Sequence record: LT960552.1
Reading direction: 5' to 3' (one strand)
DNA: 64,000 nucleotides
Shown piece after piece: positions 1 to 64,000 of this stretch (positions are counted from its first letter, which is position 1; every line of letters starts with the position of its first letter). A program made the position numbers and the translations under genes. A model generated the notes under the pieces. It had not been told where the DNA came from. It ran no database searches and saw only the letters and a list, made by a program, of their open reading frames with translations.

Positions 1-181
1 TGCAGATATGAAAAAATTATCAGTACTATATCCTGGAATTTTATTCACGGTTAACGTTAGTATTCCTGATTATGAAGTAAATGAACTGCATTACTTCTAT
101 GAAGGCAAAACTCACGAAGCTGTGATCACATTCTCACCATTCGATGAAGAACTTTTGAAATAAATAAAGTACCACAAAAGA

Positions 182-210
182 TGAAACAGTATATTTTTTT
201 GTGGTATAAT
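182..210 (+). promoter_or_regulatory. TGAAAC-N17-TATAAT promoter (RNA-gene class), upstream of tRNA-Arg
   Basis: TGAAAC 182-187, TGG-TATAAT ending 210; same spacing in 8 copies. Confidence 0.8.
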
Positions 211-219
211 ATTAGTATT

Positions 220-293
220 CTCCTGTTAGCTCAATTGGATAGAGCAACAAACTTCTAATTTGTAGGTTACTGGTTCGAATCCAGTATGGGAGA
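220..293 (+). tRNA. tRNA-Arg(TCT)
   Basis: Acceptor CTCCTGT/ATGGGAG, anticodon arm ACAAA-CTTCTAA-TTTGT, T-loop TTCGAAT; CCA not encoded. Confidence 0.93.
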
Positions 294-331
294 CAAACAA
301 TATAGCCTAAGCATATGCTTAGGTTTTTTTA

Positions 332-736
332 TTGGTAAAATATATGAAAGAATTAACATATCCAGAAGAAATTTTTAAAGCACTTGAAGATATACATACA
401 AAGTTCATTATACCTAATGGTAAAGTTGATAGATTTGTATCTTGGTATGATTTGGACCGTGATTTAACCGATTATGGATTTGAAATATATCCATATAAAA
501 ATGATGAATCACCAGATCAAATATGTTTGTATGGAAGTATAGGTACTACATATATAACAAATCACACTCTTATTTTTTTTATACATGGTGGCGGAATTCC
601 TCCTTCATATATTGATGATTATATAAATCTTACCGAAGAACAACATTTTCAACTTGGAACAACTACCTTCCTTGCTGGAGTTTTTGAATTTAATGATTTT
701 AAGAAAATACACGAATACTTTAAGAAGATTACATAA
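332..736 (+). CDS. hypothetical protein, EEQHFQ-motif family
   Basis: ORF track; C-terminal TEEQHFQL motif. Confidence 0.7.
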   Translation: MVKYMKELTYPEEIFKALEDIHTKFIIPNGKVDRFVSWYDLDRDLTDYGFEIYPYKNDESPDQICLYGSIGTTYITNHTLIFFIHGGGIPPSYIDDYINLTEEQHFQLGTTTFLAGVFEFNDFKKIHEYFKKIT

Positions 737-1212
737 TGGAAAGAATATTAGTTTTTAATTATGAATATGAAACTCATGTTGAATACCCAGGTGGTCCTGG
801 TTGTCTTGGAAAAATTGAATGGAACGAAATTAGTGAAACGATATTTGAAATATTCGAATTACAAACTGATGGTACATATAGATTAATAACTCAATTTGAC
901 CAAACAGCATATACATTTGATGAAATATGTAACTATCAATACGATTTATATTTGTTAGTACTAACAAATGAGGCATATCATTTTAATAATATTCATGAAG
1001 AAAGAGTTGATCTGTTTGAAGAATTGTGTAAGAATGAACTTAACACTTTAAACAACCGAATGTGGATTGAGTACTGGATACAGTACCATCATACTAGATG
1101 GATAAATGATTATGAAGAAAAACAAGCCAGAAAAGCCGCTGAAGAAGCCGAAAGCCAATCCATTACCGTGGCTTCAACAATGGTTGAAAACGCCTCAGAT
1201 GCCTGTCAGTGA
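736..1212 (+). CDS. hypothetical protein
   Basis: ORF track, coupled to previous stop. Confidence 0.7.
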   Translation: MERILVFNYEYETHVEYPGGPGCLGKIEWNEISETIFEIFELQTDGTYRLITQFDQTAYTFDEICNYQYDLYLLVLTNEAYHFNNIHEERVDLFEELCKNELNTLNNRMWIEYWIQYHHTRWINDYEEKQARKAAEEAESQSITVASTMVENASDACQ

Positions 1213-1372
1213 GCTTCCTGAAGTTAATAAAAATAAAGGGGTTGACAATGAATCCAAACAGTAGTATAGTACATAAATCAACAAGACTTAGTGATGAAAC
1301 AAAATCTCGGCTGAAAGAAATGTTAAATCCATTAAGTAATGTGGTATTTGTCAACTTCAATAGGAAGTGATT

Positions 1373-1567: not shown

Positions 1568-1598
1568 ATTCCAACTGTTTGAAAGTACTAAAAAAACT

Positions 1599-5732: not shown

Positions 5733-5912
5733 TCCAGAAACACAAAAAGCTGTAGATCCTGAGAGTATTGGTAAAGATTCATGGAAACGCTTTTTGTTAG
5801 CAGTACTTATAGTTTCTGCTGCAATCATCACTTATAAGATTTTGTAAAAAGTACTTGACATATAGAAAATTTTATAGTACTATATGTCGAGTTGAATTAA
5901 TTCATAGGTATT

Positions 5913-7042: not shown

Positions 7043-7156
7043 GCAGTGATCGTCTAGAGGCTTAGGACACGAAAAGCGATTCTTGATTAAGAATCTTACG
7101 GCATCCACAACTTTCATTCAACGAACGTAACGCAGGTTCGAATCCTGCTCACTGCA
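7043..7156 (+). ncRNA. CAGCA-module element 1: Glu-type tRNA body with anticodon arm replaced by module
   Basis: GCAGTGA/TCACTGC acceptor, D arm GTCTAGAGGCTTAGGAC, T arm GCAGG-TTCGAAT-CCTGC; insert GATTCTT..AAGAATC-TTACGGCAT. Confidence 0.8.
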
Positions 7157-7865: not shown

Positions 7866-7991
7866 GTGGGGTTAGCTCAGTTTGGTAGAGCAGCGAAAGA
7901 AACCAAAATGGAATCTTGAAAAGGATTCTAACAGCATTATATCTTCTACTGTAAATTCGCGGGTCGGTGTGTTCAAATCCACCACCCCACA
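7866..7991 (+). ncRNA. CAGCA-module element 2: tRNA interrupted by 51-nt module insert (GTA loop retained)
   Basis: GTGGGGT/ACCCCAC acceptor; GCGAA-[insert 7898-7948]-CTGTAAA-TTCGC; insert has GAATC..GATTC stem then TAACAGCAT. Confidence 0.85.
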
Positions 7992-8146: not shown

Positions 8147-8509
8147 ATGAAAGTATATATTGATGACATTCGCGATCCAAAAAAGTACTTGACACCAGAA
8201 CAGGCCGATGGTATTGTATGGATTAAAGAAGCATGGAATGCACGTAACTTTTTAGTTGAACATGAATCCGTGATTGAAGTACTTCATCTTGATAATTACC
8301 TTGATGATGAATTCATTACCGGAACAGATATATTCTTTATGGTTGCAGGTGAAACCATATGGGGTGATCGGTCAGAATGGGCTAATCTTAAAACAATTTA
8401 TTTGCATTCATCAGATACTGATGTAATTGAAAAGTTGATGAAATATAAAGATGAGCTTCAAACAGCAGGGGTTGAATTAATTGACAACCACCAAGAAAGG
8501 AACTACTAA
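8147..8509 (+). CDS. cyclic-phosphate-processing receiver (cREC)-like domain protein
   Basis: KVYIDDIR..W..LHLDNYL..GTDI pattern of this receiver-fold family (recalled, not searched). Confidence 0.7.
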   Translation: MKVYIDDIRDPKKYLTPEQADGIVWIKEAWNARNFLVEHESVIEVLHLDNYLDDEFITGTDIFFMVAGETIWGDRSEWANLKTIYLHSSDTDVIEKLMKYKDELQTAGVELIDNHQERNY

Positions 8510-8869
8510 ATGAAAGTTTACGTAGATGATATTCGTAATCCAGCTAACCATCTCAGTACTGAACAGGCTGAAGGTATTATTTGGATTAAAGAGTGGTGGG
8601 AAGCACGTAACTTCATTTTGAAGAATGGATTAGATATTGAAGTATTGCACTTTGATAATTTTTTAGGTGATCCAAATCGTCGAACTGGTGGTGATATTCT
8701 AAGTTCAGTAATGTATCGTTTAAAACGTGGTAAATTTCCTAATTTGAAACAAATTTATTTACATAGTTCAGATAAAGAAGTAATTGATAAATTATATGAT
8801 TCATTTATTGAACATTGTAATGAATATGGAATTGAGTTAATAAAAAATTCACGTCCAAATCGTAGTTAA
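8510..8869 (+). CDS. cREC-like domain protein, tandem paralog
   Basis: KVYVDDIR..W..LHFDNFLG..GGDI; obvious paralog of upstream ORF. Confidence 0.7.
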   Translation: MKVYVDDIRNPANHLSTEQAEGIIWIKEWWEARNFILKNGLDIEVLHFDNFLGDPNRRTGGDILSSVMYRLKRGKFPNLKQIYLHSSDKEVIDKLYDSFIEHCNEYGIELIKNSRPNRS

Positions 8870-8875
8870 ACAAAT

Positions 8876-8996
8876 GGCGAGTTAGCTCAGTGGTAGAGCA
8901 CGTAGAAACCAAGGATTCTAGTACTAGATTCCCGCAGCAACAATAACTCATACTATGATAAAGTCGTGGTCGGGGGTTCAAATCCCTCACTCGCCG
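8876..8996 (+). ncRNA. CAGCA-module element 3: tRNA body with anticodon arm replaced by module
   Basis: GGCGAGT/ACTCGCC acceptor, canonical D and T arms; insert GGATTCTAG..CTAGATTCC-CGCAGCAA. Confidence 0.85.
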
Positions 8997-9061
8997 CAAA
9001 TAAATATCATTTTTCGAACCAACTGTGATAAATAAAAATAAATCATAGAGGGTTCGAAAAA

Positions 9062-9694
9062 ATGAAACAATGTTTAAATTGTAATAATGAAATTGATGAT
9101 AAGAAAAAGTTTTGCAATAGTTCGTGTGCTGCAAAGTACAATAATTCTCACAGGATATTATCGGAAGAAACAAAATCTAAAATTTCTAAATCTTTAAAAG
9201 GTCGAGAAGTTAAATTTATTGAAACTGAAAATGTTAAGTCTGGAAGACTTCGAGCGGGTGCTAAACGGAGAGAGGCAGCATTGGAACAATTGATGAAACG
9301 TGATTTTAATGATTTAAGTTTGGTAAGAAAAAAGAAACGTGTTAGAATAGAGCAAGAAAATAAATGTTTCAGGTGTGGATTGAATGAATGGATGAATGAA
9401 CCATTAATATTAGAAGTTGATCATATAGATGGTGATAATACTAATAATATAAGAGAAAATTTACGTGCATTATGTCCAAATTGTCACTCACAAACTGACA
9501 CATGGAGAGGTACGAATTCACGAAAAGTAAAAATTTCTGATGATGATTTAGTATCTATATTAAAAGAATCTAAATCCATACGAGATGCAATTTTAAAGGC
9601 TGGTATGTCAATTACCAGTCATAGTTATAAAAGAATAAACTTATTAATTGAGAAATATCATATTAATTTTTTACTAAGGGTAAAGGAGGTATAA
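9062..9694 (+). CDS. HNH homing endonuclease
   Basis: LEVDHIDGDNTNN..NLRALCPNCH; N-terminal CxxC/FCxxxC and NUMOD3-like HILSEETKSKIS. Confidence 0.9.
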   Translation: MKQCLNCNNEIDDKKKFCNSSCAAKYNNSHRILSEETKSKISKSLKGREVKFIETENVKSGRLRAGAKRREAALEQLMKRDFNDLSLVRKKKRVRIEQENKCFRCGLNEWMNEPLILEVDHIDGDNTNNIRENLRALCPNCHSQTDTWRGTNSRKVKISDDDLVSILKESKSIRDAILKAGMSITSHSYKRINLLIEKYHINFLLRVKEV

Positions 9695-9696
9695 TT

Positions 9697-9903
9697 ATGT
9701 TCCTTGATGAAATTAAACACGTTCCGTTTCCTAGTTATAAATCATTAGAAAAGGCACGTACTGAATCATCTAAATCAATTAATCCAACAACATATGATCG
9801 TTATAAAAAATATCATTATCCAGTAGGTACTGAATTTCGTTTAGCAAAAGCTATTGATTCTTTAATTGTTAAAATTAAAAAGGTAATTAAATATGTCAGT
9901 TAA
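9697..9903 (+). CDS. hypothetical protein
   Basis: GGAGG SD. Confidence 0.65.
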   Translation: MFLDEIKHVPFPSYKSLEKARTESSKSINPTTYDRYKKYHYPVGTEFRLAKAIDSLIVKIKKVIKYVS

Positions 9904-10498
9904 ATTTACTCCAGTAGTAACGTCGTTAACAAATACACTTGTTGTTGAATTAGAATACGAACATGGTGATGCAGATGCAACTACATATGACTATGCATCA
10001 ATCTCAGTACTTCCTGAACAGAAACAAACTATTGGGGGATTGCTTTCAATTATTGAGCATGGTTTAGAATGCCAGAATGCCGAACGATATGATGACACTA
10101 TTGATCCATTTTTTGTTGATGAAACAGTAACCTATGACAATGACCAAGGTATTCCATTAGTTGGAGTTGAAATTCGTTTTGGTTTTGATTATAATGCTCC
10201 GAAAGAGAAAGGAACTGTAATTGAAGTTGATAATGACCAGCAATATATTATTGTTCGTTCAGCAACGGGTGAAGTACACCAATTAGAATTTGATGAACTT
10301 GAAGATTGTATTACTTCATCGATTGGTATTATGGTAATGGATGGTAGTGAAATCAGCTTTACATATAATGGTATTAGTGTTAACATTGGTAGTGTTGGTG
10401 ATTGCACAGTTGACCAGCAATATAATGCATCAGGTGGTATTAACGCAGTTTATTACTATGATGAAAATGGTATTAAATACATTGTAACTGATTATTAA
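9893..10498 (+). CDS. hypothetical protein (EHGD motif)
   Basis: ORF track. Confidence 0.7.
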   Translation: MSVKFTPVVTSLTNTLVVELEYEHGDADATTYDYASISVLPEQKQTIGGLLSIIEHGLECQNAERYDDTIDPFFVDETVTYDNDQGIPLVGVEIRFGFDYNAPKEKGTVIEVDNDQQYIIVRSATGEVHQLEFDELEDCITSSIGIMVMDGSEISFTYNGISVNIGSVGDCTVDQQYNASGGINAVYYYDENGIKYIVTDY

Positions 10499-10704
10499 AA
10501 TTTGCGGGAACGCTTGACAAACTGCCAAACACCCCGTTAACATAGGGGGTTGTTTATGAAGTACTTTTATGAAGTATTAATTGTATTAGTAATTTTGGTT
10601 GGTCTTATTGCTTTCTGGTTAAAAAGTTTATTAATTTCAATACTAGGAATATTAATATTCTTAGTTGGATGTTTAATTGAATACGTTGTTAATAGGATAA
10701 AAAC

Positions 10705-11064
10705 ATGAAACATTTTCTTGAAGTATTATTTGTTGCTATTGCAGTAGTTGCTATGATGTTAGGTTATACAGTAATTTCAATTTGGTCAGCAATGTTTGCT
10801 ATTATCTTTTGGGCTGCTCCTAATTCATCAGTTAAAAAAACTCCCGAAGATTATCTTAATGAATCTCGTAAATTAAACGTATCAGGAGCAGAGGTTGAGT
10901 TTGAATTTTTATCGGATAAAGGTAAAACTTTTACAGTTAAATTAGAACCTCATTTGTATATTAATGATGATATGCTTATGGATAGTTTGGTAGAATATAT
11001 CGTTAAACACACTGGAATTCAAACCAGTTCTGAACGTTTAAATATCATTTCTATAAAAAAATAA
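10705..11064 (+). CDS. membrane-anchored hypothetical protein
   Basis: N-terminal hydrophobic segment. Confidence 0.65.
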   Translation: MKHFLEVLFVAIAVVAMMLGYTVISIWSAMFAIIFWAAPNSSVKKTPEDYLNESRKLNVSGAEVEFEFLSDKGKTFTVKLEPHLYINDDMLMDSLVEYIVKHTGIQTSSERLNIISIKK

Positions 11065-11070
11065 TTATTA

Positions 11071-11094
11071 AAAACCCTTTTTTAAGGGTTTTTT
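11071..11094 (+). terminator. intrinsic terminator
   Basis: AAAACCCTT-TTTT-AAGGGTTTT followed by T run. Confidence 0.6.
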
Positions 11095-11098
11095 AATT

Positions 11099-11184
11099 GG
11101 GGATATGGTGTAATGGTAGACGCAGGGGATTCAAAATCCCCCGCCCTTAGTGGCGTGTCAGTTCGAGTCTGACTATCCCCACCA
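11099..11184 (+). tRNA. tRNA-Leu(CAA)
   Basis: GGGGA-TTCAAAA-TCCCC, long variable arm, encoded CCA. Confidence 0.95.
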
Positions 11185-11304
11185 AATATTTTAATTAAAC
11201 TCATTTTTGTACTTGACATAAATCAAGAAATGTCTTACAATGTGTATATGTTCAGTAATGAACTAAACCGTTGTTAAACTATAAATTACCTTTTGGGTGA
11301 AAAA

Positions 11305-12918
11305 ATGAAAAAAACTTTATTAGCGTTATCTATTGTAGTAGCATCAATGACTGCATTTAACGCAACCGCAGCAGTCTCTTTAAAATCATCAGGCGACCAA
11401 TTTGGTCCGGCTATGTCTGATTTACTGAATTCAAATGAAAACGGTAACTGGAATCAGCAACGATTCATGAACACGTTCAATAATCGCTTTAATGGTACTG
11501 AAGCAGAAGCATTAGCATTGTTTAATGCTGTAAAAGGTGGTAATGTTCCAACATCACTTGATAGCTTTAATAGTACTTTACCATCTTCAGGTGGCACTGT
11601 CACTAAAGGTGATAAGGGCGACAAAGGTGACAAAGGCGAAAATGGTGCAGATGGTGCAGATGGTGCAGATGGTGCAGATGGTACAAAAGTATCATTAACT
11701 CCAGATGGTACTATTACATTGGATGATGGTAAAGGTGGAACCGTTCAACAAGATTTGGCTACACAAGCTGAATTAAATCAAGAACGTTATAAACTTGAAC
11801 AAAAAGATAAAGAACACGATGTTACTCTTACTGATCATGAAACTCGTTTAGATACAGTCGAAAATATGACGAATGGTTTAAATGTCGTTGTAGGGACTAA
11901 TAAACAAGATATCGAAGAATTAAAAGACGGTAAAGCAGACAAAAAAGATCTGGATAAAGAAGTTGCAGATCGTGATGCTGGTGATAAAGTACTAGATTCT
12001 AAAATTGATAATGTAGTATCAAATCAATCAAGTACTGATGCTGCACAAAATGCCGCCATTGATAGTAAAGTAGATAAAACTACACAAGCAGCGAAAGATT
12101 CAGCTCAAGATACTGCTATTGGTAATAAAGTTGACAAAAGTCAATATAATACTGATAAAGTAATTCAGGGTATTCATGATGCTGCACAAGACAATGCAAT
12201 TATCGGACTGGCAGTAACAAAAGCAGACAAAAAAGATCTGGATAAAGAAGTAGCTGACCGTAAAACCGCAGATAATAAATTGCAATCAAATATTGACAAT
12301 GAAGCAAATGTGCGTAATAATGCAGATGTTGCATTGAAAAACAATATTGATAAAAATAAAGCTGACCAACTTGGTGTTGATACTGCACAAAATGCCGTTA
12401 TTGATACTAAAGCAAGTAAGCAAGATTTAAACACTGAAGTTGATGAACGTAAAGTAGCTGATAAAAAGTTGCAGAAAAACATTGACAATGAAGCAAATGT
12501 ACGTAATAATGCAGACCAAGTTCTTAGTTCTCGCATTGATACAAATAGTACTACTTTAGTACAACACGACCAACGTATTACAAGTAACACACAACGTGTT
12601 GGTGTAGTTGAAAATCGTGTAACTAATTTAGAACAAAGTACTAATCGTCGGTTTACAGAATTAAAAAGTACTGTAGATGATAACCGTAAAGTTGCAAGTG
12701 CTGGTATTGCTGGTGCAGGTGCAATGGCAAATATTCCACAAGTATCGCAAAATAGTACTTTCTCTGTCGGTGCTGGTATTGGTGGTTATGATAGTGAGCA
12801 AGCAGTTGCTGTAGGATTCTCTGCTCGTATTAACAACAACATTGTAACTAAGGTTGCTGTAAGTACAAATACACAATCCGAGTTGTTATGGGGTGCTGGT
12901 GTAGGCGTAGAATGGTAA
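11305..12918 (+). CDS. YadA-like trimeric autotransporter adhesin with collagen-like repeat
   Basis: Signal peptide, (GDK)3/(GAD)4 Gly-X-Y repeat, coiled-coil stalk repeats, C-terminal anchor AGIAGAGAMANIPQ..GAGVGVEW. Confidence 0.9.
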   Translation: MKKTLLALSIVVASMTAFNATAAVSLKSSGDQFGPAMSDLLNSNENGNWNQQRFMNTFNNRFNGTEAEALALFNAVKGGNVPTSLDSFNSTLPSSGGTVTKGDKGDKGDKGENGADGADGADGADGTKVSLTPDGTITLDDGKGGTVQQDLATQAELNQERYKLEQKDKEHDVTLTDHETRLDTVENMTNGLNVVVGTNKQDIEELKDGKADKKDLDKEVADRDAGDKVLDSKIDNVVSNQSSTDAAQNAAIDSKVDKTTQAAKDSAQDTAIGNKVDKSQYNTDKVIQGIHDAAQDNAIIGLAVTKADKKDLDKEVADRKTADNKLQSNIDNEANVRNNADVALKNNIDKNKADQLGVDTAQNAVIDTKASKQDLNTEVDERKVADKKLQKNIDNEANVRNNADQVLSSRIDTNSTTLVQHDQRITSNTQRVGVVENRVTNLEQSTNRRFTELKSTVDDNRKVASAGIAGAGAMANIPQVSQNSTFSVGAGIGGYDSEQAVAVGFSARINNNIVTKVAVSTNTQSELLWGAGVGVEW

Positions 12919-12983
12919 TTGGTTGAATACGTTAGGGGTACACTGTACCCCTAAAATTTTAAGTTAGATAGCAGGAGAATTCA

Positions 12984-13493
12984 ATGTATACAGAAGAATA
13001 TTGTGAAAACAATTTGATAAACATTGGAAAAGGTGCTTCCCGAACAGTTTTTGCAATAAATCTTGATTATGTAGTTAAAGTTGCACATAATAAATTTGGT
13101 ATAGACCAAAATATTCAAGAGATAAAATTGTTTCAAAAATATGGAAAGATATTACCTCTTTGTAAAATAGATCTTTACCATAGTAATGAAAACTATATAA
13201 TAATGGAACGTATTAATACTTTTAATGTAGAGTATAATGCATTTGATATCACCCAAATAGATATGATATCACATTTGGTTTGTGTTGAACAAATTGATAA
13301 TGATTATATTAGCACATTACCTCCAGTACTGGCAGAATTTGCAAATAATTTACTCAGTAATGAATTAAGTAATGACGAAATTAGAAATGTATTGTATGAT
13401 GTTGTACATTATAATGTTGGTATAAAAGATGGTAAGATATTAATTCTTGATTATGGATTTACTGAAGAATTAGATTCTGAATATTGGGAATAA
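12984..13493 (+). CDS. minimal protein-kinase-like protein
   Basis: IGKGASRTVF Gly loop, VVKV lysine, DVVHYN catalytic loop, LDYG. Confidence 0.7.
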   Translation: MYTEEYCENNLINIGKGASRTVFAINLDYVVKVAHNKFGIDQNIQEIKLFQKYGKILPLCKIDLYHSNENYIIMERINTFNVEYNAFDITQIDMISHLVCVEQIDNDYISTLPPVLAEFANNLLSNELSNDEIRNVLYDVVHYNVGIKDGKILILDYGFTEELDSEYWE

Positions 13494-13615
13494 AAAATAG
13501 CTTGACATGATGATTTGAATTTGATATAATGTATATCACATCGACGGATGATAAACGTAACTCTGGTACTTATGATTAAGTACTTTTTTGAAAATAAAAT
13601 ATAAGGGCTTTATAA

Positions 13616-13840
13616 ATGGCTAAGAACACAATTACTGATATTGGCGAAGTTGAACGTACTGTGAATTATATCAAGTTCCAGATCTCTCAAGCTGACGAGC
13701 AGCTTGCACCATTCGCTAACAGCGATAAGCCAAAGATTTGCTATGCACATCTGTTGGAGTGGAAAAAGCAGTTGCAATCTGAACTGTATGAAATCCGTCA
13801 GGCTCAGCAGAAAGCACGTCATAACAATCCACACAAGTAA
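13616..13840 (+). CDS. hypothetical protein
   Basis: ORF downstream of TTGACA-N17-TATAAT (13502-13530). Confidence 0.7.
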   Translation: MAKNTITDIGEVERTVNYIKFQISQADEQLAPFANSDKPKICYAHLLEWKKQLQSELYEIRQAQQKARHNNPHK

Positions 13841-13900
13841 TAAGCCATGCCGCCAGCATTGTTGGCGGCGTCTTTTAAGTGATAACAAGAGTATATTATA

Positions 13901-14143
13901 ATGAAAAGTGCAACAGCGTTAAAAAATATGAATCAGCGTATTCAAACATTACGTTCTCAACTGGATTTAGCTTGGTCAGATTGGAGTAAGTTAAATAGTA
14001 TTGAGACTAAAACCAAAGATGAATCAAAAGATCTATCTAAAATTTCAGGTTTTATTAGTAAATTAAATTATGAAATTCGCGGTTTGGAATTGTCTTTTAA
14101 TGAATTGAAAAAACAAGTCATTGATGAAATCATTTTGTCTTAA
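13901..14143 (+). CDS. coiled-coil hypothetical protein
   Basis: ORF track. Confidence 0.6.
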   Translation: MKSATALKNMNQRIQTLRSQLDLAWSDWSKLNSIETKTKDESKDLSKISGFISKLNYEIRGLELSFNELKKQVIDEIILS

Positions 14144-14149
14144 TAAAAA

Positions 14150-14620
14150 ATGGGGTTAGTTATGGGTGTGATAGTTATTTACTGTATATTAGGTTCCCTT
14201 GGTTTATTCACATTGTATATGTTTGTAGTAACATCTGCAATGGGGACAGAACGACTTAAAACTTCTCAGTACTTTATGTCTTCATTGAGTTATTGTGAAG
14301 AAGCAACAACTAAAATTAATTTGTTGATTGATAAGTATGAAGCAGGGCTTATTAAAGCAAAATTAAAAAATAATGTAATTGAATTTACTGAAATGGAAAA
14401 AAATATTCCAGCAGGTGAAATCTGGATAGCAAATAAATATTTTTCATATGGTCAGTTACATCGTTATGGTGCGAATGGAAATATCTCTTGGCAATGTAAT
14501 AAACCAAGTTTAAAAACTTTTAAACGAATTATTAAACTTGAAAAACAGCTAAACGTTGCTCATCAAGAACCAGTACCGAAAAGTGCAAAATCAACAGATG
14601 AGCCTGTAATTTTGGACTAA
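14150..14620 (+). CDS. membrane-anchored hypothetical protein
   Basis: N-terminal TM segment. Confidence 0.65.
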   Translation: MGLVMGVIVIYCILGSLGLFTLYMFVVTSAMGTERLKTSQYFMSSLSYCEEATTKINLLIDKYEAGLIKAKLKNNVIEFTEMEKNIPAGEIWIANKYFSYGQLHRYGANGNISWQCNKPSLKTFKRIIKLEKQLNVAHQEPVPKSAKSTDEPVILD

Positions 14621-14724
14621 GGGCGTAATTGCCCTATTTTAATTAAGAGATTTAAAATATACATTTGAGAACTTCATGGTATGGGAAAAGTAGTGAATTT
14701 CTTTCAAATGTTATCGTAAATATT

Positions 14725-14753
14725 TGAAACAACTAAAAAAATTGTGGTATAAT
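14725..14753 (+). promoter_or_regulatory. TGAAAC-N17-TATAAT promoter upstream of module element 4
   Basis: TGAAAC 14725-14730, TATAAT 14748-14753. Confidence 0.8.
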
Positions 14754-14760
14754 ATAGTAC

Positions 14761-14886
14761 ATAAGGCAACGGAATCTTACAGCAAAAATACTAATTTTGA
14801 TGAAAACGAAACGACGAGGTTCGAATCCTCACCCACGAATTGCCTTATTATTAGTGGGAGCATGGTGCTGGATAAACAAAGATTCC
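14761..14886 (+). ncRNA. CAGCA-module element 4: minimal permuted tRNA-like cargo
   Basis: GGAATCT-TACAGCAA ... GAGG-TTCGAAT-CCTC, CCCAC/GTGGG closed acceptor, short D-like hairpin ... AGATTCC. Confidence 0.8.
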
Positions 14887-14907
14887 AAAATTTAAGTTAG
14901 AAAAATA

Positions 14908-14936
14908 TGAAACAAATCAAAAATTTGTGGTATAAT
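14908..14936 (+). promoter_or_regulatory. TGAAAC-N17-TATAAT promoter
   Basis: TGAAAC 14908-14913, TATAAT 14931-14936. Confidence 0.8.
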
Positions 14937-14945
14937 ATAAGAAGT

Positions 14946-15056
14946 AAAGCGGGATGGTGATTGATGAAAGCTGTTATTTGATTCTAGACAATCATAATAA
15001 GCGAGTAATAGAACAGGGTTCTTAATATCACATGGGTTCAAATCCCTGTCGCTGCA
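14946..15056 (+). pseudogene. degenerate class II (Ser-like) tRNA-like RNA with elongated anticodon arm
   Basis: T-loop TTCAAAT, weak acceptor AGCG/CGCT, long stem TTATTTGATT/AATCATAATAA with 6-nt loop CTAGAC. Confidence 0.5.
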
Positions 15057-15057
15057 C

Positions 15058-15188
15058 AAAAGCAACAAATGAAATCTTACAGCAAACACAACATTTTTTC
15101 CTTGCATAGAAAAACGGTGGGGTTCGATTCCCCAACATCCAAGTTGCTTTTTAGGATGTGTCTGGACGACCGTATGACACAGATTTCA
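15058..15188 (+). ncRNA. CAGCA-module element 5: minimal permuted tRNA-like cargo with TGC loop hairpin
   Basis: TGAAATCT-TACAGCAA ... TGGGG-TTCGATT-CCCCA, ACATCC/GGATGT closed acceptor ... AGATTTCA. Confidence 0.8.
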
Positions 15189-15193
15189 GTACT

Positions 15194-15268
15194 GTTCCGT
15201 TAGACAAATTGGTATAGTCACCACACTTTCAATGTGGATTTCTGAGGGTTCAAGTCCCTCACGGAACG
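15194..15268 (+). tRNA. tRNA-Glu(TTC)
   Basis: CCACA-CTTTCAA-TGTGG; GTTCCGT/ACGGAAC. Confidence 0.93.
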
Positions 15269-15272
15269 CTAA

Positions 15273-15387
15273 AGGATTCGTACAGCAACAATAAACTCTT
15301 AAAATTCAATTGGTGAAAACAACCTTGCAGTTCGATTCTGCTTCCACAATGCGTGGATCTGGTGGTGGATAGAAAAAACCGAATCCT
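15273..15387 (+). ncRNA. CAGCA-module element 6: minimal permuted tRNA-like cargo
   Basis: AGGATTCG-TACAGCAA ... GCAG-TTCGATT-CTGC, TCCAC/GTGGA ... CGAATCCT. Confidence 0.8.
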
Positions 15388-15416
15388 GATTTTAATTAAG
15401 AAGTACTAAAGAATTT

Positions 15417-15578
15417 GATACACACGGATTTATACAGCAAACATAATCCTAAAATAAAACATACGATAATGTTATTAACTCGGAATTCGTTCCTTTCGTT
15501 AGTACTTGGCAACTTGGGTACTTAAATAAGTTGTATCACCTCATGTGTATCGGATTAGTGGTGATTATAAATAAATCC
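15417..15578 (+). ncRNA. CAGCA-module element 7: multi-hairpin cargo
   Basis: GGATTTAT-ACAGCAA ... ATAAATCC; internal hairpins CAACTT/AAGTTG and ATCACC/GGTGAT. Confidence 0.7.
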
Positions 15579-15614
15579 AGTAAATCAAAAGTACCTTTAT
15601 CGGTACTTTTTTAT

Positions 15615-15707
15615 GGAAGATTGGCAGAGTTTGGTTTATTGCACAGGTCTTGAGTACCTGCGGGGGTTAATAGCCCTCCGTGAGTTCGAATCTCACATCT
15701 TCCTCCA
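15615..15707 (+). tRNA. tRNA-Ser(TGA), loop CTTGAGT
   Basis: CAGGT-CTTGAGT-ACCTG, long variable arm, encoded CCA. Confidence 0.9.
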
Positions 15708-15726
15708 AATTTTATGTAGTACAATG

Positions 15727-15800
15727 GGGTACGTAGCTCAGTCTGGTAGAGCAGCCATGCGAAAACGGTGTGTCGGTGGTTCGAATCCACTCGCTCCCCA
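15727..15800 (+). pseudogene. degenerate tRNA (Phe-like, loop GCGAAAA, poorly paired anticodon stem)
   Basis: Canonical D and T arms; mismatched acceptor and anticodon stems. Confidence 0.55.
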
Positions 15801-15804
15801 CTAA

Positions 15805-15861
15805 GGAATCTAGCAGCAACCATAACCCAATCAAACTTTTAATTTGACAATTATGGATTCC
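15805..15861 (+). ncRNA. CAGCA-module element 8: isolated Lys(TTT) anticodon stem-loop cargo
   Basis: GGAATC-TAGCAGCAA-CCATAA..TCAAA-CTTTTAA-TTTGA..TTATGG-ATTCC. Confidence 0.85.
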
Positions 15862-15884
15862 AGTTATTTTAAGTTGAGAATAGC

Positions 15885-16289: not shown

Positions 16290-16358
16290 ATGCAACCGCT
16301 TGGAAAGCGGTCAGGTTAGGTGATACTAGCCTCGTAGGTTCAAATCCTATCTTTACCG
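16268..16358 (+). tRNA. tRNA-Ser(GGA)
   Basis: ACCGC-TTGGAAA-GCGGT, long variable arm, G73. Confidence 0.93.
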
Positions 16359-16408
16359 CAAAAGTAATAACCTCCTTATTAAAGAATACATACCCATAGG
16401 AGAATATT

Positions 16409-28174: not shown

Positions 28175-28229
28175 TTATAAAAATAATTGACAGTACTGAT
28201 AGTTTGTAGTACTATCATAATTAAAAATT

Positions 28230-38777: not shown

Positions 38778-38843
38778 TATCAAAATTATAGTACTAGAAA
38801 TTAGTCTAGTACTTTTTAAGTTAATATAAAACAGGGGGTCATT

Positions 38844-57238: not shown

Positions 57239-58387
57239 TTATACTACTATAATAATTTCTTCAAATATTAATACATTTGAACTGTGTGTAGTACTGTATC
57301 CACCATCAACTGCACCACATGCATATAACTTATTATTATCGGTTAATATATAAGTATTTTGATTACTACCAATAATTAATTTTATTATTGAACTTCCCCA
57401 AACAGGAGTAATTGAACTAAATGTTAACACATTAGTAGTATTTCCCCTACCTAACTGACCACTCACATTATAACCCGTATTCATGTAAATTCCATTATTA
57501 ACTAAATGTGTATTGATTGAATTAAGACCTACGAATAATTTTGAAATTGATGAACCGGCAGTTGTTATTTCAGTTAAAGTTTGATACACTGTTATTGTAC
57601 CACCATTTCCAAATTCACCATATATATTTGAACCACCTAATGTTGTACCTGTTATATATAATTTATTGTCCTTTATTACAAAGGTTGAAGTACCACCACT
57701 ACCAGCATCAAATGTGCTAATATTAGTCATTACCGAAATAAATGTTGTAGTACTTGTTGTGTTTCCGGTTCCTAACTGATATGAACCGTTAATACCACAA
57801 CCCAATAAGTTGTTTGATGAATCCTTTATGAAATTACCTCTAGCCTCTTTTACATCTGAACGAATAAATCTTAAAACATTCACTGAATTAGTATTGGTTC
57901 CATCACCAAAAGACGATATTGTAGTTACATTATTTTTCCCTGAACAATAATATGAACCATCTTTTAGTACTACTTGCATTTTTGCACCGTAATGGAAATA
58001 TATATCAGAAATTTGTGCGTCAGTTGTGATACCTACTGGACTGAATAAATCAGTTCTATTGACAAATGTAGTATTAAAATTTAAAGTGTCTGAACCAGAT
58101 AGTACTCTTGTATCTCCAGCGAACCAAAATTGATTACTAATGTCAATGTATAGTACTACTTGTGTACTTCCAGATGCCCATACGTCTTTAACACTAGAAC
58201 GTATAAAAATAAATTTAGGTACTGGATTAGTATGCCCTAATCCTAATTCACCATTTCTATTTGAACCAGCACCATATAAGTCACCACCAGTGGTTAAGTA
58301 TAATACCGCATTGGCTGAAGTGACAAGTTTCTTTATTCCTGGTATCGGTAATATATTAGTATTGCTTATTATTGGAAAAGGTAACAT
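57239..58387 (-). CDS. RCC1/BLIP-II-like beta-propeller protein (MLPF family)
   Basis: MLPFPII start; repeated LYGAGSN..GELGLG motifs. Confidence 0.8.
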   Translation of the reverse strand: MLPFPIISNTNILPIPGIKKLVTSANAVLYLTTGGDLYGAGSNRNGELGLGHTNPVPKFIFIRSSVKDVWASGSTQVVLYIDISNQFWFAGDTRVLSGSDTLNFNTTFVNRTDLFSPVGITTDAQISDIYFHYGAKMQVVLKDGSYYCSGKNNVTTISSFGDGTNTNSVNVLRFIRSDVKEARGNFIKDSSNNLLGCGINGSYQLGTGNTTSTTTFISVMTNISTFDAGSGGTSTFVIKDNKLYITGTTLGGSNIYGEFGNGGTITVYQTLTEITTAGSSISKLFVGLNSINTHLVNNGIYMNTGYNVSGQLGRGNTTNVLTFSSITPVWGSSIIKLIIGSNQNTYILTDNNKLYACGAVDGGYSTTHSSNVLIFEEIIIVV

Positions 58388-58397
58388 TTTATTCTCC

Positions 58398-59528
58398 TTA
58401 TACTGTTACTAATGTTATTGGTTGGAATGTTAGTACATTGGAACTAGGAGTTACGTTAAATCCACCATTTACCCCACCACACGCAACTAAACTGTTATCT
58501 TCGTATACTATATATGTATTTAAGTTACATGAGAAAATAGTAGCAGTACTAGGTACTGTAATATTCGGTACTAATCCAAATGTATAAACTACTCCTGAAC
58601 TTCCTCGTCCTAACTGACCGTTAGTACCATTACCAGTATTCATATACCCACCAGAATTGTGTACATGAGTTAATACATTACCAACGTTTTGTACTAATTG
58701 TGTTATCCCACTCCCAGCTTGTACTATATTGGTTAATGTACTATAAGTAACAGCAGAAGTACTTCCATCACCAAATTCACCGTATATACCTAATGATGAA
58801 CCCATTATATATAATAATCCATCCTTAACGCAAAATATTGACCTAAGTCCAGACCGGATTAATGATACTCCTGTACTCAATTGCACGTATGTCGTACTCC
58901 CTGAACTCACTACCGATGACCCCAACTGCATATAAGTGTTTGTTCCACATCCATGTAAATTATTATCAAAATCCAATATGTAATTACCATTAACCGATAA
59001 TACATTATTTCTAATAAATCTAAATGCATTGAATGAATCAACGTTAGTACCATCACCAAAAGATGTACTAGTACTTATATTGTTCTTACCCGTGCAATAC
59101 AATCTACCATCATTAAGCAACACACTCATCTTCGCATTAGAATAGAAATCTATATCCTTTATGTCCAATATGGATATGTTCGCAACAGAAAACATTGTGG
59201 TTATATTCACAAAACCATTAGTTGATCCAGCCGATCCAGTGTATATATAGGGATTGCCAGAAAACATTACTTTACCATCAGTGTCCATAACTATTATAGC
59301 TGCACTCGATAAACTAGCATAAATATCCCTTACTCCTGTCCTTATTAATATAAATTGTGGCTTTGCCCCTGTACTACCCAACTCACCTTGTACGTTTGCT
59401 CCCGCTCCGTATAAATTACCTGTAGCAGTTAAATATAATAATGCAGTACTACTAGAAACAAATTTCTTTATGTTCTTTGGATATACAGGTGATGACTTTG
59501 TATTACTTATTATCGGAAATGGTAACAT
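58398..59528 (-). CDS. RCC1/BLIP-II-like beta-propeller protein (MLPF family)
   Basis: Close paralog of adjacent gene. Confidence 0.8.
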   Translation of the reverse strand: MLPFPIISNTKSSPVYPKNIKKFVSSSTALLYLTATGNLYGAGANVQGELGSTGAKPQFILIRTGVRDIYASLSSAAIIVMDTDGKVMFSGNPYIYTGSAGSTNGFVNITTMFSVANISILDIKDIDFYSNAKMSVLLNDGRLYCTGKNNISTSTSFGDGTNVDSFNAFRFIRNNVLSVNGNYILDFDNNLHGCGTNTYMQLGSSVVSSGSTTYVQLSTGVSLIRSGLRSIFCVKDGLLYIMGSSLGIYGEFGDGSTSAVTYSTLTNIVQAGSGITQLVQNVGNVLTHVHNSGGYMNTGNGTNGQLGRGSSGVVYTFGLVPNITVPSTATIFSCNLNTYIVYEDNSLVACGGVNGGFNVTPSSNVLTFQPITLVTV

Positions 59529-59537
59529 AATTCCTCC

Positions 59538-60638
59538 TTATAATGGTAATGTTATTTGTGCGAATTTTCCTGAAGCAGATGTCGTTCCAGGTAATAATCC
59601 CGCTGTACCACCTGTGCCATATACTTTCCCATTCTTAACGTAATATACACAATTGTTAGTACTCACTAATTGACTTATACCTATGTCTGTACCAGTAGCT
59701 GTACTGTCGATATTACACTTAGTATATACAAATACCTGACTTTGGGTTAATCCTATATATGAACCCTGACCTGTACCATATATCCCAGCAGCCGTTCCTA
59801 GTACTGAACCATACGTAACACATGCACTCATTAATGGCTGAACTCCTGCACTCGGTACTACTACTGTACTCAATGCAGTCTTGTTACTCGTACCACCATT
59901 ACCTAATACTCCTAATGCACCATTACCTACAGTGTACCAACCATTACTCTTTAATACATATAATGTTAAATTACCTGCCTGTACACCTATAACACTACTC
60001 CCATTAGTCACTGCTACCCATTGCATCTGATTAGCCGCCGATGTGTTTACTATCTGATAATAATTGTTTACCCCTGTACCATATAATACATTACTGGTAT
60101 CTAAATAATATGAAGTACTTATCCCTAAACTTATCGATAAACAAAGGCTACTCCTTAATACAGGTAATGCATAATTACCACCTACATATCCTACCCATGA
60201 ACCACTCATGTATAATGCATTGTTACTCAGTACAAAACTTAATGTATTACTATTGCACTGCAAATCACGTACTGAATGAGTAGTCCCTGAAATCGTTAAA
60301 TCAAATAATATAGTACTTGTACTAGTGAAACTTGTACCTGAACCTGATAACCATTCAGTCTTCCCACTGTAATATAACTTGTTATCCTGCTGTACTACCA
60401 TCGTGTAACTAAATTGTCCTCCACACCATACATCCTGTACGTTACTCTTTATCTTAAACCAACTGCTTAATGAACCAGTATTACCTAAACCAAACTGACC
60501 ATATGCATTAGTACCTAAACCGTATAAATCTCCATTAGTATATAGTACTACTATGAAATTATACCCAGTACTTATCTTCTTTATTGTCCCTGTAGGTATT
60601 ATATTACCGTACTTTACTATCACCGGAAATGGTAACAT
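59538..60638 (-). CDS. RCC1/BLIP-II-like beta-propeller protein (MLPF family)
   Basis: LYGLGTNAYGQFGLG repeats. Confidence 0.8.
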   Translation of the reverse strand: MLPFPVIVKYGNIIPTGTIKKISTGYNFIVVLYTNGDLYGLGTNAYGQFGLGNTGSLSSWFKIKSNVQDVWCGGQFSYTMVVQQDNKLYYSGKTEWLSGSGTSFTSTSTILFDLTISGTTHSVRDLQCNSNTLSFVLSNNALYMSGSWVGYVGGNYALPVLRSSLCLSISLGISTSYYLDTSNVLYGTGVNNYYQIVNTSAANQMQWVAVTNGSSVIGVQAGNLTLYVLKSNGWYTVGNGALGVLGNGGTSNKTALSTVVVPSAGVQPLMSACVTYGSVLGTAAGIYGTGQGSYIGLTQSQVFVYTKCNIDSTATGTDIGISQLVSTNNCVYYVKNGKVYGTGGTAGLLPGTTSASGKFAQITLPL

Positions 60639-60649
60639 CTCTTCTCTCC

Positions 60650-61816
60650 TTAAAATGGTAATGTTAATTCTATAAATGATGTGCCTAATGTATTAGACGT
60701 TATACCCAATGAAGTACTACCACACCCCAATATTATATTATTCATCCTTCCTATATAACTCGTGTATGTCCCTATCCTTATTATATCTGTACTAGATATT
60801 AATACAGGTACTATCGTATAACTTCCTATTACTGATGTACTTACTCCTAATCCCAATGCACCACCATTGTTATTACCACCACATACATGTAATTTGTCAT
60901 CTATTCCAATGTAACTCGATGTCGGCGGAGATGATATGAATACCATATCTTTACTAGGAGAACTCTTGTATTGAACTGGCAACTGTACCTGTATCATTAA
61001 TCCAGTACTGTTCGTATTCGTGAAACTCGTATTACCATCACCAAATGTACCAGAATCATTAGAACCTAAACAATATCCAGTACCAGATGTATAGGCTATT
61101 ACCTTTGACTCACTTACCCTTACCCCTAATATCGGATCTGTAACTGTACTGAACATACGTGTTAATGATAATATACTCGCATTTAATACCCCTCCCTCTG
61201 TACTACTCTGTAAACAATATGTCGCGTTCCTTCCCGCTCCCCATACAGTTCCATCAGTTAACATCAGTACAGTACTGTTCCCTGTACTCGTTACATCTAA
61301 TACATTACTGCGTATGAATGTTAATGCCTTATAACCTACCGCAACTCCTGTACCTAACTCCCCGTACCTGTTTAATCCTATACCGTATAAATCATTATTG
61401 TTCATCAATACCATCGTGGTGAAACCAAAACTTATCTTCTTTATCTGTGATATGTCTATAGTACTAAAATATGAACTTACATCAGTAAACACCGTTACTT
61501 CATTCGATGTACCACCTAAATTAAATACATCCCTAGCACCACTTATATATACTTTGTTAGTATTCGTTACTATCATTGTACTCGAAGCATTACATGACAT
61601 CAATCGTACATCATTCCTTATGTATGTCAGTACGTTAAATCTGTTTACCTTATTACCTACACCTAATTGTCCACTCGTGTTATATCCACTCGTGTAAAAT
61701 AATCCAGTATTCAATAATACTATAGTCTGAAATAAATTACTGTATCCAGTTTGTATATCCTTGATGAACGCAGGTTCAGGTATATTTGTGTTGCTTATTA
61801 TCGGAAATGGTAACAT
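60650..61816 (-). CDS. RCC1/BLIP-II-like beta-propeller protein (MLPF family)
   Basis: GYNTSGQLGVG, GLNRYGELGTG repeats. Confidence 0.8.
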   Translation of the reverse strand: MLPFPIISNTNIPEPAFIKDIQTGYSNLFQTIVLLNTGLFYTSGYNTSGQLGVGNKVNRFNVLTYIRNDVRLMSCNASSTMIVTNTNKVYISGARDVFNLGGTSNEVTVFTDVSSYFSTIDISQIKKISFGFTTMVLMNNNDLYGIGLNRYGELGTGVAVGYKALTFIRSNVLDVTSTGNSTVLMLTDGTVWGAGRNATYCLQSSTEGGVLNASILSLTRMFSTVTDPILGVRVSESKVIAYTSGTGYCLGSNDSGTFGDGNTSFTNTNSTGLMIQVQLPVQYKSSPSKDMVFISSPPTSSYIGIDDKLHVCGGNNNGGALGLGVSTSVIGSYTIVPVLISSTDIIRIGTYTSYIGRMNNIILGCGSTSLGITSNTLGTSFIELTLPF

Positions 61817-61827
61817 CTCTTCTCTCC

Positions 61828-62976
61828 TTATTCTGGTGTGCTTACTATAATGAAATCATATGTGTTTATTCCTAACCATGTGCTAGTACCACATCCATAT
61901 ACTGTGTTATTGCTTAATATAAATGTACAACCATTTACTACATGGGCTGAACTTATTGAACCTATTTCTGTTCCTAAATTGAATGTACTAAATCCAGTAC
62001 TCCTATCAGTACTACTACCCATCTGATATCCAGCCAGCCCCGCACCATATAAAGAACTGTTGTTATAGTAAAAAGATTTTAATGTCTGTGATACAGTCTG
62101 AACTATACCTGTCGCAAAATCTTGTACTGAACCATTTTGACCACCATTACCTATGGTGAAAACAAATACTGTGTTATTAGGCCATGCAGGAATTCTTCCC
62201 CCAGGATTCGCACTAGTATTGCCACAAAATAATATCCTTGTATCCTGCATCGTACTGTCAGTACTAGCATATAGTAAACTATGTGTAGGATGCTCCTTAG
62301 CTTGTATAGGATATGTATAAGGAGATGGTAATGCTATCTGTGTCCAGCCTTGTTGTATAGTATTCGTATTCGTCCCTAACTTACCATTATTACTGTTCCC
62401 TGTACCATATAACTTATTGTCATTCGTTATAGCAAATGATGCGTTCGTATTATGTTGTACTGACCGTACATTACTTAATGATTGTGTGTATGTAGTCCTA
62501 TAGGTAGAATCAGCTCCTAACCAGTACTGATTGTTAAACCCTATTCCATATAATATACCATTAGTTAATAATATAAATGTTGAATTCGTCCCACAACATA
62601 TCTGCTTTACCGTAGTCTCAGGTGTACTCGTTAATGTATATAACTTATCATACCTAACCCATAACTTTCCTTGTGGACTATCATCATATCCTAATGGCCT
62701 AAAATATCCTGCACATTGATATTCTCCTGTACTTGTCCTTATTATTGTATGTGTAGGACCAACCCATACATCATCTACTCCTGTCTTGACTAATACCCAA
62801 TTCAAACTGTCAGATGCATGATCTATTCCAAATGCCCTCAGTTGATTCGTTCCCCTCATGTATAAATTACCATTACTGTATAATAATGCTATCGTCTGAT
62901 ATGAAGATACTATCTTCTTTATCTGTGACTTTATTATTATATTACCATAATGATTAATAATTGAAAATGGTAACAT
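61828..62976 (-). CDS. RCC1/BLIP-II-like beta-propeller protein (MLPF family)
   Basis: MLPFSII start; LYGTGNSNNGKLG repeats. Confidence 0.8.
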   Translation of the reverse strand: MLPFSIINHYGNIIIKSQIKKIVSSYQTIALLYSNGNLYMRGTNQLRAFGIDHASDSLNWVLVKTGVDDVWVGPTHTIIRTSTGEYQCAGYFRPLGYDDSPQGKLWVRYDKLYTLTSTPETTVKQICCGTNSTFILLTNGILYGIGFNNQYWLGADSTYRTTYTQSLSNVRSVQHNTNASFAITNDNKLYGTGNSNNGKLGTNTNTIQQGWTQIALPSPYTYPIQAKEHPTHSLLYASTDSTMQDTRILFCGNTSANPGGRIPAWPNNTVFVFTIGNGGQNGSVQDFATGIVQTVSQTLKSFYYNNSSLYGAGLAGYQMGSSTDRSTGFSTFNLGTEIGSISSAHVVNGCTFILSNNTVYGCGTSTWLGINTYDFIIVSTPE

Positions 62977-63259
62977 ATGTTTCTCCATACAAATCTAGTA
63001 CTCTATTGTACTTGTAATCATATTTACCCACTTTATACCCCTCTTGTACCTTTTTAATACTATAACATGTACCACAATATACCCCCTAAAACCTCTCCAG
63101 TACTTCATAGCAAGCACGTGTTTGCTTCCTGTAGTATCGCTTCGCGATATCGAAAGGATTCAAACAAGACAAAACTACGTTTCTTAAAAGTTATGTATAT
63201 ATTAACAGTACTATATGTTTGTACATATATATTGAAATATCTAACCTTGGACTATAAAG

Positions 63260-63281
63260 TACTTGATAGTACTATCAAGTA
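63260..63281. repeat. 22-bp perfect palindrome centred on AGTACT
   Basis: TACTTGATAGT-ACTATCAAGTA. Confidence 0.85.
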
Positions 63282-64000
63282 TAATTGAGTACTGTTGAGA
63301 ATAGTTCAGTACTATTGTAAACTGTTCAGTACTACCCCCTGCCGCTATATCTTCTCCTGAAGTCGAATAGTACTTCGCACTTTTTGCTACATAACCTTTT
63401 TTCCAAAATGTTAACATGAGGTTCAGGAAAATCTCGAAGGTGCGTGAAATCAAATACGAATCCTATAAAATTTGGAGCACCCTCTAGACTTTTTTCCAGT
63501 ACTCAAAAGTTCAAAAAACATTTAAGGATTCTTTAAAATTAATTTAAAAGTATATAGTACTGTTCATTTATACAGTACTAAAAATAATTAAAGAAAAATG
63601 AATAAAAGTACAAAAAAGGGTTGACGAGATAAGCTGGTGATGATAAGATGTATCCAAGATGAAGAACACAGTTAGACACCTCTCTCGTTGAAGCTGAAGA
63701 AATCATCTAGTACTAGTAAATTGCCGAACATGTTGCCGCATGTTATTACTGGTACGAAATGGGAAACAATCTTTCCCCACCTCTCTTTCTCGCTATTGTT
63801 CAGGAAAGATTTAGTACTGAACGTATGGAAGTAATATTGATAAAATTAGGATAGTACTTTATAATAAGTTCTCATAAAGCACACGCTGGAGAGTATATTA
63901 TAAAGTACTATCCTTTTTATATTGAAGGATTGTTAAGTACTATACTTAGATTTATATTGTGGGTTCTTTGAATTTTGATTGTACTATCCCTATCTGCTAT

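Follow-up and report, generated by a model that had tools for sequence, protein, structure and literature searches.

Why has a phage genome that lost most of its GC-containing palindromes accumulated one palindromic hexamer, AGTACT, to an extreme degree? The question is posed by the final 64 kb of Yersinia phage fHe-Yen9-03 (LT960552.1, 352,596 bp, genus Eneladusvirus), which corresponds to record positions 288597–352596 at 100% identity. This whole stretch of 64,000 nucleotides is referred to below as the window, and coordinates are window coordinates unless given as record positions. It has a GC content of 28–35% and carries about 124 annotated genes, mostly small and on the plus strand nearly throughout, and 27 tRNA genes. 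AGTACT occurs 205 times between positions 1 and 64000, compared with 16.18 ± 3.97 (maximum 27) in 100 dinucleotide-preserving shuffles. It is the top-ranked hexamer of the window, at 9.5 times the base-composition expectation of 21.6. We propose that selection maintains AGTACT throughout the genome as a recognition word and that a putative two-fold symmetric (dimeric) factor reads it in duplex DNA, an explanation that we favor with modest confidence.

The preliminary description of this DNA had claimed an extreme overrepresentation of AGTACT in coding and noncoding DNA alike, and on both counts the claim is borne out. The scattered copies comprise 158 in annotated coding sequences (CDS), distributed over the three reading frames (84/22/52), and 47 in noncoding DNA, at densities of 3.0 and 4.0 per kb, respectively. 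The earlier hand count of about 16 copies in 63001–64000 was exact (63099, 63207, 63258, 63268, 63288, 63308, 63328, 63369, 63498, 63556, 63574, 63709, 63813, 63853, 63904, and 63936).

An excess of this kind could be an artifact of codon, dipeptide, or base composition, since Ser-Thr and Val-Leu dipeptides are somewhat frequent. However, when synonymous codons were shuffled gene by gene without altering the protein, only 37.8 ± 5.1 copies (maximum 50) resulted, compared with the 158 found in CDS, and shuffling the codon order of the window genes yielded 20.3 ± 4.3. The enrichment therefore persists once codon and dipeptide usage are controlled for. Additionally, all frames are used, and noncoding DNA is denser in the word than coding DNA. 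Ser-Thr dipeptides number 142 versus 84 expected and are spelled AGT-ACT in 83 cases versus 21 expected; the word itself explains the dipeptide surplus, and its excess distorts protein sequence too. The synonymous shuffle rules out the artifact, to which we assign practically no probability.

A Markov-corrected analysis of the k-mers, which the preliminary description had suggested, gives a more qualified picture. The excess remains at the highest order, but the z-score of AGTACT is only 4.6. This low value arises because the hexamer itself carries the excess of its parts, GTAC (z = 13.5) and AGTAC/GTACT (z = 10.5). The other NGTACN palindromes do not share the excess in the window (GGTACC 0, CGTACG 1, TGTACA 28). 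The bases flanking AGTACT follow a weak and symmetric rule, in which G at −1 and C at +6 are found at about 0.36 times the expected frequency, and C at −1 and G at +6 at about 1.8 times. Symmetric flanks are present in five genomes, with C at −1 enriched 3.1-fold in Klebsiella phage RaK2 versus 1.8-fold in fHe-Yen9-03.

The individual copies are also conserved. In a comparison with Serratia phage BF (294 kb aligned, 17.5% different), 64.0% of AGTACT sites are kept in place, compared with 37.5% of all hexamers and 35.1% of hexamers of the same composition, and AGTACT ranks 1 of 981 hexamers in retention. In the window, third codon positions diverge from BF by 0.225 within AGTACT sites versus 0.342 elsewhere, and aligned noncoding positions by 0.068 versus 0.140; at first and second codon positions, the divergence inside and outside the sites is no different. 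Between fHe-Yen9-03 and fHe-Yen9-04, 2.9% of AGTACT copies are lost versus 4.7% of all hexamers, with 28 losses and 18 gains. Retention at silent and noncoding positions therefore indicates that single copies are protected at the DNA level, with some turnover.

Site conservation at synonymous and noncoding positions would likewise be produced by a mutational or repair drive, a sequence-specific repair or modification-coupled process of the very-short-patch type, that converts near-cognate words into functionless AGTACT. There is a precedent in HIP1 of cyanobacteria, which has been linked to orphan methyltransferases (PMC4390886). Nevertheless, such a drive appears improbable. The transition neighbors AGTATT and AATACT are not depleted (53 each versus about 49 expected, by hand calculation from base composition), and no enzyme is common to all carriers among the families tested. 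A drive would also leave the fixed placement at promoters and beside the genome terminus, described below, unexplained, and it does not account for a provirus that retains the signature within host DNA lacking it. The preliminary description had offered a mutational sink created by a phage enzyme as one option; with neither a candidate enzyme nor a depletion of neighboring words, it appears improbable as well.

The excess extends far beyond the window. The whole fHe-Yen9-03 genome contains 1012 copies of AGTACT versus 136 of the reversed word, with copies in every 5-kb bin and a doubled density (about 32 per 5 kb) in record positions 1–20 kb; no AGTACT-free gene block was found in this genome. 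Similar counts were obtained for fHe-Yen9-04 (1008), Serratia phage BF (1072), Erwinia phages pEa_SNUABM_50 (1078), Kaldavass (1114), and Hallingskeid (1313), Cronobacter phage GAP32 (1011), Klebsiella phages fENko-Kae01 (941) and RaK2 (937), Escherichia coli phage PBECO4 (891), and Salmonella phage Munch (850). The excess is thus common to the whole Rak2-like jumbo-phage clade. The sigma-70-family factor of fHe-Yen9-03 is encoded in the window by g503 (41210–42202), and the corresponding proteins of AGTACT-rich relatives are down to 29–35% identical to it. A Vibrio jumbo phage with a distant homologue of this factor shows no enrichment (81 AGTACT versus 98 for the control). The 4.64-Mb genome of E. 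coli K-12 contains 400 copies versus 1147 of the reversed word, and the phage is about 33 times denser. AGTACT is not mentioned as a motif in the papers describing CBB, RaK2, BF, and the Erwinia Eneladusvirus phages, and text searches were likewise empty. In sequencing data, the window sequence was matched by contigs of one wastewater metagenome only and by no RNA run.

The premise of the preliminary description, that phages deplete palindromic hexamers, holds true here. The tetramer GCGC is absent from fHe-Yen9-03, fHe-Yen9-04, BF, and RaK2, where 215–308 copies would be expected (217 for fHe-Yen9-03), and few or no copies of most GC-containing palindromic hexamers are found in fHe-Yen9-03. 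At least 17 palindromic hexamers, each with about 4.6 copies expected, are missing from the window, and the same holds for BF, RaK2, and the small proviruses discussed below. These absences fit a phage that avoids restriction to an extreme degree or is immune to a nuclease cutting at GCGC. As a target of restriction avoidance, AGTACT has the opposite sign, being enriched instead of depleted, and in the jumbo clade it is the lone, extreme exception to the palindrome purge. Conversely, AGTACT is completely absent from the T4-like phages RB43 and Phi1, which have ordinary bases, and from Dickeya phage JA11 (controls 81, 79, and 69, respectively). Neighboring phage lineages therefore treat the word as a dangerous restriction-type site; many other 6-bp palindromes are purged from these three phages as well. 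Among enterobacterial phages with unmodified DNA, AGTACT is either banned or hyperabundant.

The arrangement of the copies provides further information. The spacing analysis suggested in the preliminary description revealed no periodicity (mean 313 bp, coefficient of variation (CV) 0.98), but a class of pairs 20–21 bp apart stands out. Over the whole genome, pairs up to 110 bp apart match the Poisson expectation, and the largest gap is 2.7 kb versus about 2.4 kb expected. Such near-random, even spacing without long gaps would suit a replication word, that is, a preferred start site of a phage primase, with the density selected to shorten lagging-strand gaps. A palindrome would serve both strands at once, a small additive benefit per site fits the in-place conservation, and the enriched G at +6 creates CTG, the start triplet of E. 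coli DnaG. However, the primases known to us read trinucleotides, and no replication protein is common to the proviruses and the jumbo clade. Since the promoter positions, the terminal array, and the doubled density of the early region would also remain unexplained, we regard a primase word as a very doubtful explanation.

The spacing spike at 20–21 bp is found in fHe-Yen9-03, BF, and RaK2. In fHe-Yen9-03, it originates from predicted strong early promoters in record positions 2–14 kb with the arrangement AAAAAGTAC-TTGCAT-N10/11-AGTACT(G/T)-TATAAT, in which one AGTACT adjoins the −35 box and the other adjoins the −10 box across a canonical spacer of 16–17 bp. Judged from their boxes, the promoters bearing these pairs are probably strong early promoters of the sigma-70 type. 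AGTACT stands at this set distance from the −35 and −10 boxes in about 15 of the predicted strong early promoters (record 2–14 kb) and in a few pairs of the window, and more than 95% of all sites lie outside promoters.

Three of the window pairs are on the plus strand. The promoter-type pair at 5850/5876 (5850–5881) reads AAAAGTAC-TTGACA, spacer, AGTACT-ATATGT and lies 40–66 bp before g431. The pair at 28192/28208 (28192–28213) overlaps two boxes, TTGACA in TTGAC-AGTACT and TATCAT in AGTAC-TATCAT, 21–37 bp before a tRNA-Tyr gene. The pair at 38790/38808 (38790–38813), 18 bp apart, is intergenic and precedes g498. A further pair with the same 18-bp distance, 63556/63574 (63556–63579), falls within the terminal repeat predicted below.

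The most conspicuous concentration of the word is found near the end of the window. Eight copies lie within 168 bp (63207–63374) in a gene-free region of about 1 kb, and the densest 300-bp intervals of the whole 352.6 kb genome are located at 63099–63554. Within the cluster, five AGTACT units with spacings of 10, 20, 20, and 20 bp form an iteron-like array (63258–63333) with a unit of approximately TTCAGTACTnTTG, and the first three units lie in an imperfect longer palindrome. The terminal repeat of the related phage CBB was found by read depth and supported by pulsed-field gel electrophoresis (PMC5259590). Its annotated start lies between ...AGTACTgttgaccccttccgcta and tatccgttcctgaagtcgaat, and the same junction is the record break of BF. 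By homology to both, the left physical terminus of fHe-Yen9-03 and the start of its terminal repeat are predicted within 63334–63368, between position 63347, where ACCCCCTGCCGCTA ends, and position 63348, where TATCTTCTCCTGAAGTCGAAT begins. The last AGTACT of the array is 14 bp upstream of this predicted terminus, and the next AGTACT is 21 bp downstream. The physical genome end is therefore probably located inside the window and not at the record end. The end of the CBB repeat aligns near record position 17135 of fHe-Yen9-03, and the predicted terminal repeat would span about 17.8 kb, roughly coinciding with the high-density early region.

Several features of the window and of the genome stand beside these arrangements. 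The only long block of minus-strand genes, five tandem paralogs of 366–388 residues annotated as RCC1/beta-propeller-like (57239–62988), ends at the gene-free terminal region. A tRNA gene with a CUA (amber-reading) anticodon and three overlong tRNA-like genes of 114–126 nt are located at 1645–1720, 7043–7156, 7866–7991, and 8876–8996; the overlong genes may carry inserts, and one of them holds an AGTACT at 8920. The recombination word Chi (GCTGGTGG) has 13 forward copies in fHe-Yen9-03 versus 0.9 expected, an enrichment of about 15-fold. Six of these forward copies lie inside the predicted terminal repeat (record 8170–16371), and Chi was also noted at window position 41750; 30 copies are present in BF and 18 in RaK2. 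The T4-type late promoter word TATAAATA is about four-fold underrepresented in the whole record (17 + 4 copies versus about 71 expected per strand), with a strand bias as expected were stray copies harmful; its counts in the proviruses are uninformative.

The word is not confined to jumbo phages. A pattern scan of viral contigs revealed small proviruses in which AGTACT is the commonest hexamer, at about 10 times the expectation. Provirus G002 contains 103 copies in 31.8 kb and provirus G003 contains 85 copies in 29.5 kb, with the Mangrovibacter island and G003 ranging from 85 to 88. The proviruses follow the same flank rule as the jumbo phages and contain no GCGC. G003 encodes a lambda-J-type tail fiber, a tape measure protein, a fused protease-capsid, a portal, and a terminase, a gene set that identifies it as siphovirus-type. 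It is found in Mangrovibacter plantisponsor (NZ_QGTS01000014.1, approximately 51.5–85 kb), where it forms an island of about 34 kb beside a serine integrase. Inside the island, GC is 0.32–0.40, with 3–11 AGTACT and no GCGC per 2.5 kb; outside, GC is about 0.5, with 0–2 AGTACT and 7–29 GCGC per 2.5 kb. The prophage has an overall GC content of 36% in a host of about 51% and adjoins a truncated HAD-hydrolase gene, and its early genes gave no Pfam matches. The possibility that the provirus is a satellite packaged by the jumbo phage was rejected, as it neither resembles the terminal region nor contains a cut-site motif. Another viral contig, IMGVR_UViG_3300028603_000131 (41 kb), contains 48 AGTACT versus 7 for the control, but its top hexamer is GAGTAC and GCGC is present; it may use a different, longer word that contains AGTACT.

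The proviruses raise the possibility that a conserved enterobacterial DNA-binding factor reads AGTACT and that unrelated phages have converged on its word. By BLAST and by profiles of 401 clade-conserved open reading frame families, the only proteins common to the jumbo clade and the proviruses are those with a lysozyme domain, plus a weak capsid match, which makes a single shared phage reader unlikely. Two unrelated lineages that have the same word, flank rule, and GCGC ban without sharing proteins give more weight to a reader that is host-encoded or otherwise common to both. The sharp boundary of the provirus island against host DNA, the host sigma-70 type of the pair-bearing early promoters, and the accumulation of the host word Chi by the jumbo phages are also in line with a host reader. 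On the other hand, no known host protein fits, the flank preference at −1 depends on the lineage, and the zero counts in RB43, Phi1, and JA11 indicate that binding is not generally beneficial. We therefore consider a host reader a serious possibility, but not the likely one.

One host protein whose site contains the word is SlmA. The SlmA site, GTGAGTACTCAC, has AGTACT as its central six bases and requires G1, T2, A4, and G5, with a purine at position 3 (PMC3020112). Phage copies might therefore act as a decoy, titrating or activating this nucleoid-occlusion factor to block cell division. However, full SlmA sites (GTRAGTACTYAC) account for 0 of 1012 copies in fHe-Yen9-03, 0 of 1072 in BF, and 1 of 937 in RaK2. 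Flanks matching one half-site also occur less often than expected (GTR 10 versus 34 expected; YAC 17 versus 28 expected). Because the required flanks are depleted 2–3 fold, SlmA was rejected as the reader, and a decoy function is extremely unlikely.

Among phage-encoded candidates, the 247-residue methyltransferase of family phrog_3820 initially stands out in that the fHe-Yen9-03 and G003 copies are 48% identical, its AGTACT-rich carriers being Yersinia phages and one provirus. This is, however, a widespread T4-like gene that BF and RaK2 lack and that occurs in phages devoid of AGTACT, and it is therefore not the cause of the excess. The N6/N4 methyltransferase family PF01555 is represented in fHe-Yen9-03 and BF, whereas RaK2 and the proviruses lack it, and PF02086 (Dam-D12) is found in none of the carriers scanned. 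Downstream of the phage sigma factor gene g503, at a distance of 1.3 kb, g508 (43480–43740) encodes a DksA/TraR-type C4 zinc-finger protein, which may be a regulator acting in the secondary channel of RNA polymerase.

We propose that the symmetric palindrome and flanks, the conservation at silent positions, the promoter geometry, and the terminal array together point to the recognition of duplex DNA by a symmetric protein. Through the scattered copies, this factor would preferentially coat or mark the DNA of the phage over that of the host, each copy adding a small benefit, and a small benefit per copy fits the near-random spacing together with the site-by-site conservation. The paired promoter copies would let the same factor switch early transcription, and the terminal array could nucleate a higher-order complex for end formation, packaging, or replication. 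The overall picture would be one of numerous dispersed copies, each of weak benefit, beside a small number of structured, high-order sites. As for the origin of the putative reader, a phage gene appears to be the leading candidate, a host gene comes next, and different readers in different lineages are the least probable of the three.

Several results weigh against recognition by such a factor. No reader of AGTACT was found among the candidates tested. No HU/TF1-like protein (PF00216) is encoded by fHe-Yen9-03, BF, RaK2, or the proviruses, and no methyltransferase is common to all carriers among the families tested (phrog_3820, PF01555, and PF02086; the C5 and T4-Dam families were not scanned). 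Pfam searches of the genes beside the phage sigma factor returned the DksA/TraR zinc finger only, and the near-absence of proteins common to the jumbo clade and the proviruses bears on the same point. Apart from the 20–21 bp pairs, the copies exhibit no helical phasing or clustering. The in-place conservation would equally follow from biased repair toward AGTACT, and the terminus of fHe-Yen9-03 is a prediction from homology. Consequently, the view of the preliminary description that AGTACT is a positively selected site for a phage protein is upheld in part: the enrichment is genuine, does not stem from codon or dipeptide usage, and reflects a force at the DNA level according to the positional conservation in silent and noncoding DNA, but the word could not be linked to any protein with a binding, modifying, packaging, or recombination role. 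The suggested link to packaging, in particular, gains indirect support from the array beside the predicted terminus.

A broader and more speculative scheme, which we consider unlikely, would unite the two lineages. AGTACT could be a sequence-encoded "self" label of unmodified phage DNA, with one host-encoded or virion-carried reader that coats the incoming genome, gates the sigma-70 early promoters, and defines the end cut. The temperate siphovirus lineage would then have adopted the label, the flank rule, and the GCGC ban through dependence on, or the need to survive, the same machinery, a dialect mimicry between phages that share hosts.

A phage whose DNA is unmodified would be expected to lose its palindromes, and the jumbo clade does so, down to zero GCGC. 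That about 1000 copies of AGTACT are kept against this pressure, across genera whose sigma factors share only about 30% identity, implies that an important DNA-reading system has gone undescribed. Identification of the reader could explain how a phage tells its own DNA from that of its host without base modification, how early transcription is switched, and how fixed genome ends are made. In practice, AGTACT is a simple marker for this phage group, and, if neither modification nor protection of the site interferes, ScaI would be expected to cut at intervals of about 350 bp.

Among known systems, words such as Chi, the DNA uptake sequences, and KOPS resemble AGTACT in their genome-wide excess, which includes genes in all frames, and they are kept because a machine reads them. 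They are, however, asymmetric and orientation-dependent, whereas AGTACT and its flanks are symmetric. The SlmA site shares the central hexamer but requires the very flanks that are depleted around AGTACT. The pac site of phage P1 consists of repeated hexamers, and replication origins carry iterons; the array of five AGTACT units, which are spaced by 10/20 bp and immediately adjoin the predicted end-forming cut, would be comparable. Those elements are local, whereas AGTACT also occurs about 1000 times genome-wide. Phage SPO1 produces large amounts of TF1, a protein with a preference for phage DNA and with strong sites at the early promoters of the terminal repeat. The proposed marking of phage DNA, the early-promoter sites, and the concentration in the terminal-repeat region are similar, but TF1 is HU-like and reads the modified base hydroxymethyluracil (hmU), whereas the cue here is a sequence word and no HU-like gene is present.

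The closest described phenomenon, by analogy, is HIP1 (GCGATCGC) of cyanobacteria, a short palindrome that is hyperabundant in coding and noncoding DNA, conserved in place, and under selection, and whose reader and function have long been a puzzle (PMC5861425, PMC4390886, PMC13756078). AGTACT is likewise a short palindrome, hyperabundant in and between genes and conserved at orthologous positions. In contrast to HIP1, it is a hexamer of virus genomes with an excess of about 9-fold instead of 15–300-fold, it lacks quasi-periodic spacing (CV 0.98), and, among the families tested, it has no methyltransferase common to all carriers. It also has fixed promoter positions and an array at the predicted genome end. 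The discovery of its reader would therefore provide a tractable viral counterpart to the HIP1 problem.

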